A DNA stretch of 64,000 nucleotides. Origin: Oculina patagonica (taxonomy: Eukaryota). The position numbers and the translations under genes were made by a program. Position 1 is the stretch's first letter, and the number at the start of each line of letters is the position of its first letter. The notes under the pieces are model-generated. The model saw only the letters and a program-made list of their open reading frames with translations, ran no database searches and was not told the DNA's origin. Shown here in pieces: positions 58,058 through 60,479 of the stretch. Location of the stretch: positions 27,094,001 through 27,158,000 of the forward strand of contig NC_135762.1 of NCBI RefSeq assembly GCF_052425735.1, read 5' to 3'.

Positions 58058-60479
58058 TTAGCTAATTTTTTCAGAGAACAGTTTTCTCATTTGAATGCAG
58101 AAGTGATGAAGTGGAAATCCCATGACATTGAAGTAGTCACCATTGATAGACTTGACCAGTGTACCACCAATACCCTGTATGCCATATGTGAACAACGTTA
58201 AGGACGTTATATGTTAACACATTCTTTTTAGCAAATAGAATGCCCAAAATTATCTTTGAATCTAAGAACATCACAAACTAAAGAAGATATAAAACCAAAG
58301 TATAAAAGGAGTTAGAAGAAGATTGAGATCAGTGGATTACAAAGGGCATTAAATGCGTCCAGTATAAAAACGCGACACCCTTAACTATTACCAGTAAGAG
58401 GATTTGTTCGTATATTCATGCACTTCTTATTCGGGTATATTCGAGCAAAGTCTATTTGGTACCGAGTTTACTCATGTTCATTGGCTTCCGCAAATAGAAC
58501 ACAGTCTTTTTTTTAGAACAATCTTGTTCTTTTCTGTAAGGCCGTTTACCTTTAGGCGTTCCGTTTTTATACCAGGCAGCTTTTAATGTCTCAGGCATCT
58601 GGACGACTTTAACGTCTCTAGCATAAAAATGGTCTCTGATGATTTTTGAGTGTGCCACAAAAAAAAACTTATTAACAAACCCTGTAACAAAGAGTATCTT
58701 TTTGCCCCAAATTATCACTGATGTTTTCGCACCTTGTTAACCCTGAGCGAGATCTTGTCGGCTTAAACTATTTGGCATTTTGTTCTGAACACCCTAAGTA
58801 GGACCAAAATTGATCATTTATTTTTTTCTGAGTAAGACAATTAACATCTCCATCCCTTTCATAATATGGGAATCTCTCCCCCCCCCCCCCCCCAAGTGGC
58901 ACCAGCTATAACATGTACTGAATTTCAAGGATATGATCCTGCCTTGTCCCTTGGAAAGAAAAGATGATAACATTCACAGTTAATAATACGTTATGAAAAA
59001 CACTTGAACAATAAATTTAGCCATTTTAAAAAATTATTTGAAACATCTACAAAACAACCAATGTTCAGTTCAAGTTCATTATGGTAGCTAAAGCATGCAG
59101 CCTACCTCGCATGCATACTTTATCAAATTATGATGCATGTGGCTCACATCACAAAATTCAGTTTGAGGAATACCTTCAACATTAAGGAAACACCAAACTT
59201 GCTCCTTGTGATTGTTTGAGTTACATATAATAAGCACTTGGAATCTTGGAACTTGAGAAGTACAAGCATATTTAACTAAACAGTGCACTCGGGAGTGTTT
59301 ACTTTTCCCTTTCACATAATTTTTAACAGGGCAGTACAAAAACAAACTGGGATTTCCCGAGGGGTGTGGCGGGAATGGGGGGCTCAAACCCAAAACCTTC
59401 TTGTGGGCGGAAGGGGGGGGGGGGGGCAGGGGGTGATGGTTATTTTCTGGAACAACACAATAATAGCAATATTTTGTTTTTTTTTTATTCATCGTCTACA
59501 TGTTGTATATATAGCTAAAACAATCAATTATTTGTTAACTTTAAAACTTTACGTTGGTGTGAAGAGCAGCTGCAGTCAGCACTCTAGTACCAAAGCAGTA
59601 TACATACACTGACACTTGTATATATATAGGACACTTGCAGTGAATTAGGAACATGCATTAACTGGTTGTTATACTTTTTTCTGAGACCCTTTCCTGTTAT
59701 GGCCACTAAAGAAGATAACACATATTATTTTATGATACATGTAAGCAAAGAAACTCACATTGGTTCTCCAGTTGCAATGTAAGCATCAATGACATTATCT
59801 GTTAAGTCGCCAAATGACACCAGGGTCTCCTCATAAAACTGAGTTATTTTGGACTCCTTTATATCTAATAGAAAGAAGAGGAACTGGTCACTTTACATAC
59901 AAATACTTGCCAATGAGTAATTTTATTAACAATAGGCACTGGTTGAGAGAAATGCTGGACTGATAGACTAGTAGGCTTTGTCAAACAAATGAAGAAGTTA
60001 TGGGTTCATGTTGTGTTATTTTCTCATCACCGGTCTTCACATTGTCAGGGTACTGAGGCTTGTATGGCTCAGTGACCCCAAGAGCTGTACCGCCCAGGAA
60101 TATGATCTCTGGTAGGTTCAACCTCTCCGAATTAGTTTGGGATGCTGTGTTATTACTACCCCATCCCAAAAAACACAGATCTATGGTTACAGAAAACCCT
60201 AAGGCCTTATAATTTCCCAGTGTGTTTACATCATGTTTGCACCACGTGATGTTAGCTTACTAGTTGGTTCAAAAGAACATGAAAGCTAGTGTACACTTGT
60301 AGGCGAGGTCCTTTGCTATGAACCTGTTTAAGAGCAGCTTCAAATAACATATAACCAGAAATGCATAATCTTTCCATTCCTGTAAATTAATAAATTTATT
60401 GCGGTTTTCAGTGAAATGGAACTCTGAAATTCAAAAGCACTGAATTGTTTTTCGTGTTTATTTTATTTAGAGGGACCGC

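Follow-up and report, generated by a model that had tools for sequence, protein, structure and literature searches.

Minor-class (U12-type) introns with AT-AC termini, such as intron F of P120/NOP2, combine an ATATCCTT donor with an TCCTTAAC box 10 to 11 nt from the 3′ splice site and a terminal AC; they lie next to U2-type introns, in genomes that encode all four minor small nuclear RNAs (snRNAs). Canonical introns of this kind were reportedly described by Hall and Padgett in 1994 and by Tarn and Steitz in 1996. All of these features recur in the stony coral Oculina patagonica, in a stretch of 64,000 nucleotides analyzed at full length (contig NC_135762.1, positions 27,094,001 to 27,158,000; here called the window), where the coding sequence of a Maf family nucleotide pyrophosphatase is interrupted by an AT-AC intron close to its 3′ end. 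The coral locus differs from the canonical cases in its upstream exon, which is only 15 nt long and thus far below the usual exon-definition size.

Two further systems are close to this locus. The U11-binding splicing enhancers (USSEs) known from SNRNP48 and RNPC3 (Verbeeren 2010; Niemela 2015; reviewed in PMC8329584) share with the coral gene the short and conserved spacing between a U2-type 3′ splice site and a U12-type 5′ splice-site sequence located downstream of it; when bound by U11/U12, the USSE site can activate that acceptor via U2AF. However, USSE sites are unused as donors and lead to a nonproductive isoform, whereas the coral site is a true donor in a productive mRNA whose acceptor may be activated in a similar way. 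The coral exon also resembles animal coding microexons (≤27 nt; for example, the SRRM4-dependent neuronal ones) in being tiny, in frame, and strongly conserved in both length and sequence. It differs from them in that it is seen in assembled transcripts rather than as a tissue-regulated exon, and in having a U12-type rather than a U2-type donor. In a literature search judged from titles and abstracts, no ASMTL- or Maf-like gene was found as a host of minor introns, and the review that the search retrieved describes no microexon bounded by a U12 donor. Within the literature searched, the coral arrangement is a previously undescribed example of the known U12-type intron class, and it leaves the principles known for U12 introns unchanged.

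The split Maf gene and its transcripts

Eight exons on the minus strand make up the gene, which encodes a 214-amino-acid YhdE-type Maf protein, in a model assembled from the window and an extension of it (L003). Intron 7 is the sole AT-AC intron, the other six being GT-AG. Exon 6 (positions 59759 to 59864, 106 nt) encodes ...ATGEP and the AT of a Met codon, ending in GGAGAACCAAT. It is followed by intron 6 (58950 to 59758, 809 nt, phase 2), a U2-type GT-AG intron running from GTGAGT to ttttctttccaag, and then by the microexon GGACAAGGCAGGATC (58935 to 58949), which supplies the G of Met, the codons of Asp-Lys-Ala-Gly, and the TC of Ser. Intron 7 (58188 to 58934, 747 nt) is again in phase 2. 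Exon 8, the last coding exon (58058 to 58187), begins with ATATGGCATACAGGG, contributing the A of Ser and then YGIQGIGG...SEKIS, with a TAA stop at 58060 to 58058. With slashes marking splice sites, the minus strand reads ...ttctttccaag/GGACAAGGCAGGATC/ATATCCTTGA...(747 nt, 58934..58188)...GTCCTTAACGTTGTTCAC/ATATGGC. Exon 6, the microexon, and exon 8 join into a single open frame that ends ...SEKIS. The Pfam Maf profile is covered by exon 6 at positions 113 to 144 and by exon 8 at positions 151 to 186 (35 bits), and the microexon fills the six-position gap between them; exon 8 also aligns with residues 150 to 178 of Bacillus subtilis Maf (chain 1ex2). Searched in six frames, the entire 529-Mb assembly yielded this Maf locus only. 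Its first coding exon lies just past the end of the window, with exons 1 and 2 at extended coordinates 64361 to 64272 and 64186 to 64055 in L003.

Transcript evidence was taken from Logan contigs of runs whose RNA origin was guessed; nine such runs share 11 to 23% of the words of the stretch queried, approximately the exon share, and no run recorded as RNA contains that stretch. The comparison covered runs X1, X2, and X6, together with one raw-read poly(A) run (X23), over positions 57850 to 63840. In both X1 (study P1, depth 93) and X6 (study P3, depth 21.8), contigs connect 59758 with 58188 through 13 additional letters, ATCCTGCCTTGTC on the plus strand. Reverse-complemented, these letters are GACAAGGCAGGAT, which together with a flanking G and C constitute the microexon; only 13 of the 15 letters stand out in the alignment, since the microexon's outer bases, G at its start and C at its end, are identical to the bases at the intron ends and were assigned to them by the aligner. 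As assembled in two independent studies, the transcripts consist here of exactly exon 6, the 15 nt, and exon 8. An RNA contig covers exon 8 itself from 58066 to 58188, and a 401-nt record of X6 runs on through exon 5 (61277 to 61341, with GT-AG joints in three runs), exon 4 (62434 to 62498), and exon 3 (63714 to 63755). The remaining joints (59864/61277, 61341/62434, and 62496/63712) read CT..AC on the plus strand, that is, GT-AG on the strand of the gene. A first-pass annotation, made from the window's letters, had proposed that GEPM-DKAGS-YGIQG is built from three exons, with a GT-AG intron upstream and a U12-type AT-AC intron downstream of a 15-nt exon, and had named 59759/58949 and 58935/58187 as the junctions to look for. 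The sequence, the reading frame, the Pfam gap, and the contigs of the two studies bear out all of these.

Because intron 7 and exon 8 both open with ATAT, the junction between them can be placed in registers up to 4 nt apart. Nevertheless, the alternative registers (TA-CA, AT-AT, TC-TA, and CC-AT) fit any intron class more poorly than does AT-AC with its full U12 consensus. The first-pass annotation had supposed that clean skipping of the microexon would be blocked. No contig joins exon 6 directly to exon 8; since rare variants are lost when contigs are built, however, a skipped isoform may still exist. In X2 (organism label B), no contig crosses the microexon, and a contig spanning exons 5 and 6 (depth 151) runs 14 nt into intron 6 (59745 to 59758) and stops there. 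The same contig carries three differences within exon 6 (59782, 59794, and 59797) and may come from another population, a sister species, or an unspliced form.

The sequence of intron 7 points clearly to the minor class. Its 5′ end, directly at the exon end defined by RNA, agrees with the minor-class consensus at eight of eight positions (ATATCCTT, 58927 to 58934). Near its 3′ end, TCCTTAAC (58197 to 58204) is a perfect branch-site box at the canonical distance (TCCTTRAY, about 10 to 20 nt from the 3′ splice site), with 9 nt from the end of the box to the terminal AC and the branch A approximately 10 to 11 nt from the splice site. The combination of TCCTTAAC, 9 nt, and the start of exon 8 has an expected chance occurrence of zero. 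Pyrimidines make up 65% of the last 20 nt of intron 7, partly owing to the branch box itself, versus 80% in the upstream U2-type intron 6. The genome encodes all four minor snRNAs, with matches above the Rfam gathering thresholds in every case: three U12 genes (93 to 97 bits), two U6atac genes (111 to 113), two U11 genes (90 to 91), and U4atac (61). The U12 genes carry GAGTAAGGAAAAT, in which GTAAGGA pairs with TCCTTAAC, leaving one A bulged. The frequency of ATATCCTT was dropped as a line of evidence: the window holds 1 copy of the octamer against 2.64 expected, which is no enrichment, and the weight is therefore carried by its position, exactly on the RNA-defined junction, and by its conservation in other loci.

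Given these data, it is nearly certain that a stony-coral gene for a YhdE-type Maf (an ASMTL-like dTTP/UTP pyrophosphatase) contains a real 15-nt coding microexon, with a U2-type GT-AG intron upstream and a U12-type AT-AC intron downstream, and that the microexon is present in all assembled transcripts. An internal, in-frame exon of 15 nt that is included in mRNA falls well within the ≤27-nt range of coding microexons.

The protein aligns along its length with the Maf domain of ASMTL (2p5x; E value, 4e-47; residues 11 to 173) and also with YhdE (4p0e) and B. subtilis Maf (1ex2). The elements SGSPRR, FEE, KQKA, GADTVV, LEKP, and YGIQ stand in register with those of YhdE and B. subtilis Maf, and the Q falls opposite Gln153. 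Exon-wise Pfam Maf matches span the gene model. Tchigvintsev et al. (2013; PMC3899018) assigned the catalytic signature of Maf proteins (S-R-E-K-D-K) to their N-terminal half and predicted Ile152 and Gln153 of YGIQ to determine base specificity. In our alignments, both this signature and the R-T-Q subfamily residues are present, and by the criteria of that study the coral protein is predicted to be a dTTP/UTP pyrophosphatase of the YhdE type. Vertebrate ASMTL has a methyltransferase-like domain in addition, whereas the coral protein is a stand-alone Maf of 214 residues, a predicted enzyme. The first-pass annotation had called the split segment an active-site motif, which is correct only in part: YGIQ does hold the predicted base-recognition residues, but the catalytic signature lies N-terminal to it and DKAG is absent from the residues listed in PMC3899018. 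Because the signature is N-terminal and Ile152 and Gln153 are predicted to serve in base recognition, the split segment is better described as lining the substrate pocket than as the catalytic motif.

Conservation of the microexon and the U12-type intron

Exon 8 was compared with 1.8 billion representative proteins, and for informative matches the underlying contigs were retrieved. Including the Oculina gene, six loci were found in which a U12-type intron follows a 15-nt exon, at the same position, in phase 2, and with an [A/G]TATCCT 5′ splice site. The Montipora-like locus L008 reads cag/GGACAAAGCAGGATC/ATATCCTTTC...TTCCTTAATTGTCCATAC/C, with a U12 intron of 1444 nt and an upstream intron of 1038 nt. 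In L009, whose exon 8 is 95% identical to that of Acropora, the microexon is as in L008 and is followed by ATATCCTTGT...TTCCTTAATTGCTCCTAC/A (U12 intron, 652 nt). Both share the branch box TCCTTAAT. For L010, a scaffold from a Tara metagenome, the predicted structure is GGACAAAGCTGGTGG/ATATCCTTTT...TTTCTTTGACTTTACCTAT/A (U12 intron, 406 nt; upstream intron, 207 nt). The introns of the two remaining loci are far shorter: L011 reads GGACAAAGCAGGAGC/GTATCCTCTC...GTCTTGAC(17 nt)AG/G (95 and 61 nt), and the demosponge-like L012 reads GGACAAAGCTGGAGG/GTATCCTTTT...TACCTTCAC(14 nt)AG/C (113 and 62 nt). The donor ATATCCTT is kept in L008, L009, and L010, with GTATCCT in its place in L011 and L012. Termini among the three cnidarian-like loci are AT-AC in L008 and L009 and AT-AT in L010; L011 (GTATCCTC...AG) and L012 (GTATCCTTT...AG) have the signatures of U12-type GT-AG introns. 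Conversion to a U2-type intron was detected in none of the six loci that keep the intron. The L010 intron (L010:3048-3453; ATATCCTTTT...CCTAT/ATACGG) is in itself a candidate noncanonical AT-AT minor intron.

Loss of the intron was observed as well. In the gastropod Gigantopelta aegis, the sea anemone Nematostella vectensis, and the sea urchin Lytechinus variegatus, the U12 intron is missing and the phase-2 upstream intron is kept: cag/GGAYAARGCAGGAG.. runs straight into TAYGG, and the DKAGx codons are fused to those of YGIQ. Among the 150 best representatives, 57 are fragments of the form R/DKAGx-YGIQ with the upstream intron only. Several of these carry YGIQALGGMLVESV, identical to the ASMTL chain, and are therefore probably vertebrate; judging from such R/DKAGG-YGIQALGGMLVESV fragment proteins, vertebrate-type ASMTL appears to lack the U12 intron. 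In a further 16 of the 150, YGIQ is preceded immediately by noncoding sequence, a sign that an intron is present at the U12 position. The orthologs, to which the first-pass annotation had pointed for the position and class of the intron, thus preserve both in L008 through L012 and have lost the intron in three animals.

Pairwise blastn comparison of the coral loci aligned only two islands, with the rest of both introns unalignable. The first is approximately 36 nt around the microexon, comprising the acceptor, the 15 nt, and ATATCCTT; the second comprises exon 8 and approximately 17 nt upstream of it, including the branch box. Such islands are consistent with the footprint expected of selection on splice signals.

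Recognition, regulation, and age of the arrangement

A U2-type acceptor and a U12-type donor 15 nt apart provide a conserved natural substrate for asking how two spliceosomes share or alternate on a tiny exon. One possible model is as follows. The U11/U12 di-snRNP would bind the high-information ATATCCTT and TCCTTAAC sequences across intron 7. Because 15 nt leave no room for exonic enhancers, the same complex probably also helps to define the microexon, possibly through an exon-definition contact that reaches U2AF on the acceptor 15 nt upstream, in the manner of a USSE; contacts between U11/U12 and U2AF have a precedent reviewed in PMC8329584. Alternatively, one of the two introns may be removed first, so that the microexon would then form part of an exon of normal size. 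A stronger proposal can be entertained only tentatively, and we consider it more doubtful than not: that the U12-type 5′ splice site alone makes the exon recognizable, replacing exonic enhancers and recruiting U2AF; that exon and intron have been frozen as a pair since before sponges and cnidarians diverged; and that deletion of the whole intron is the only viable escape, conversion to a U2-type intron being nonviable. If this is true, the locus would be the shortest system found in nature in which contact between the two spliceosomes could be probed.

Less likely again is a regulatory role along the lines of the first-pass annotation, in which U2 and U12 sites 15 nt apart would force a strict order of splicing, and slow minor splicing would place Maf expression under rate-limiting, stress-responsive control. 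In human cells, the splicing of certain U12 introns is slow and varies with the amount of U6atac. The U12 intron described here is real and conserved, and unspliced contigs over its 3′ splice site reach approximately 5 to 6% of exon depth in X1 and X2 and approximately 30% in X6. These low-depth contigs (4 to 9, against exon depths of 22 to 150) extend over most of intron 7 and across its 3′ boundary. However, similar contigs cover parts of the U2-type introns 5 and 6. Special retention of intron 7 is therefore not evident, and the signal may reflect generic pre-mRNA or DNA carry-over. Moreover, the sea anemone, the sea urchin, and the gastropod have all lost the intron cleanly and kept the enzyme, which argues that U12 dependence is not essential to the gene and against an indispensable regulatory role. 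Finally, a pan-eukaryotic survey has argued for neutral processes behind much of the evolution of minor introns (Larue and Roy, 2023; PMC10639083).

The layout of microexon and U12 intron probably predates the split between sponges and cnidarians, as suggested by its recurrence in cnidarian-like and demosponge-like contigs. The Maf gene of L012 has the demosponge Ephydatia muelleri as its nearest named relative (58% identity), as does the neighboring Kelch gene (66%; next named phylum, 47%), and L012 is therefore most likely a demosponge contig. In the simplest history, which we propose here, one ancient U12-type intron would have created the 15-nt exon and been retained in sponge-like and cnidarian lineages. 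Its terminal dinucleotides would have changed between lineages, giving GT-AG in the two distant contigs and AT-AC or AT-AT in the cnidarian-like loci, and precise deletion in several lineages would have fused the microexon to the last exon. This would fit the report of Larue and Roy (PMC10639083) that deletion dominates minor-intron loss. The locus would then illustrate cleanly how a minor intron, probably dating from early animals, can change its terminal dinucleotides and be lost precisely more than once.

Several observations weigh against this overall interpretation of the locus. The contigs are of guessed RNA origin and carry no information on strand, isoform ratios, or the order of splicing, and in X23 (raw-read RNA, poly(A), single-end) all 62 of the 62 placed reads fell on intronic repeats and none on exons. 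The removal of intron 7 by U12 and U6atac is predicted from sequence signals, and exon definition and sequential splicing are both models proposed by analogy for the microexon. With respect to age, L012 was placed by identity to its nearest named relatives, L010 and L011 carry no taxonomic assignment (the best named matches of L011 reach 37 to 50% identity), and an origin before the sponge-cnidarian split is accordingly put forward as probable. The branch-site box of L011 is also weak (GTCTTGAC, approximately 18 nt from the 3′ splice site).

An alternative is that introns at the U12 position were gained independently in corals and in the distant lineages. Consistent with such parallel gain, Nematostella, an anthozoan like the corals, is without the intron, intron termini differ between lineages, and two of the loci are taxonomically unassigned. 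Nevertheless, we regard it as very improbable, since six loci agree in position, phase 2, 15-nt size, and [A/G]TATCCT 5′ splice site, and since gain of U12-type introns is very rare and precise deletion a common mode of loss (PMC10639083). U2-type AT-AC introns, a small group removed by the major spliceosome, have ATAAGT-like 5′ ends. That the U2-dependent spliceosome removes intron 7 in this way can be dismissed almost entirely: the termini alone leave the class undecided and the last 20 nt are 65% pyrimidine, but the donor agrees with the U12 consensus throughout, the TCCTTAAC box is perfect and canonically spaced, and both signals are conserved where the rest of the intron is not.

Annotation of the locus and other features

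Over residues 1 to 173, the protein is 100% identical to the GenBank entry "hypothetical protein ACROYT_G019961" of Oculina patagonica, which carries PF02545; identity is 88% with Desmophyllum pertusum and 79 to 81% with Pocillopora, Porites, Montipora, and Acropora. The GenBank entry is 174 amino acids long and ends ...GEPMDKAGSYP: the microexon is included, and the AT-AC intron is then read through (TC-ATA-TCC-TTG-A as S-Y-P-stop), so that the last 41 residues, including the base-recognition Gln, are missing. The same read-through into the AT-AC intron occurs in the GenBank model of Desmophyllum. Two models of Acropora digitifera stop at GEPM, and that of Pocillopora meandrina reads GEPIARTGLK-YGIQG from invented splice sites. 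In a model of the jellyfish Rhopilema, GEPL is joined straight to YGIQG and DKAGx is skipped, a case known from that single model. RefSeq models of Montipora, Acropora, Pocillopora, and Porites are correct and carry GEPMDKAGSYGIQG; the feature is already implicit in some public annotations. These examples agree with the earlier expectation that gene predictors miss introns of this kind, since models of the Oculina, Desmophyllum, Acropora digitifera, and Pocillopora meandrina genes are all broken at this point; predictors that accept only GT-AG break the gene here. The public models of this and several other corals are truncated or wrong exactly here, and predictors need to be aware of both AT-AC introns and microexons.

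A second annotation problem was noted in Gigantopelta aegis (L007:10064-10363), where several copies of TVERFGI(Y/N)NILKWL...KRKRWRGLE are encoded by a tandem repeat that includes the 3′ end of XP_041357343.1; the last 60 amino acids of this model may be an annotation artifact. Within introns 5 and 3 of the Oculina gene (60250 to 60450, 60850 to 61250, and 63250 to 63650), contigs of RNA-like runs reach depths in the thousands, compared with 20 to 150 on exons. These stretches have many loose ends and single-nucleotide polymorphism-like differences, and resemble interspersed repeats that are transcribed and present in many copies. Immediately downstream of the Oculina gene, more than 1 kb (56430 to 57550, read on the minus strand) contains LVGNS, TSREL, and ELTSR repeats in all three frames, which indicates a tandem satellite with a 15-nt period. 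A run of 152 N at approximately 52190 to 52375 is an assembly gap or a masked stretch. The sole Rfam match in the window is a tRNA gene at 3528 to 3594 on the plus strand (37.5 bits).

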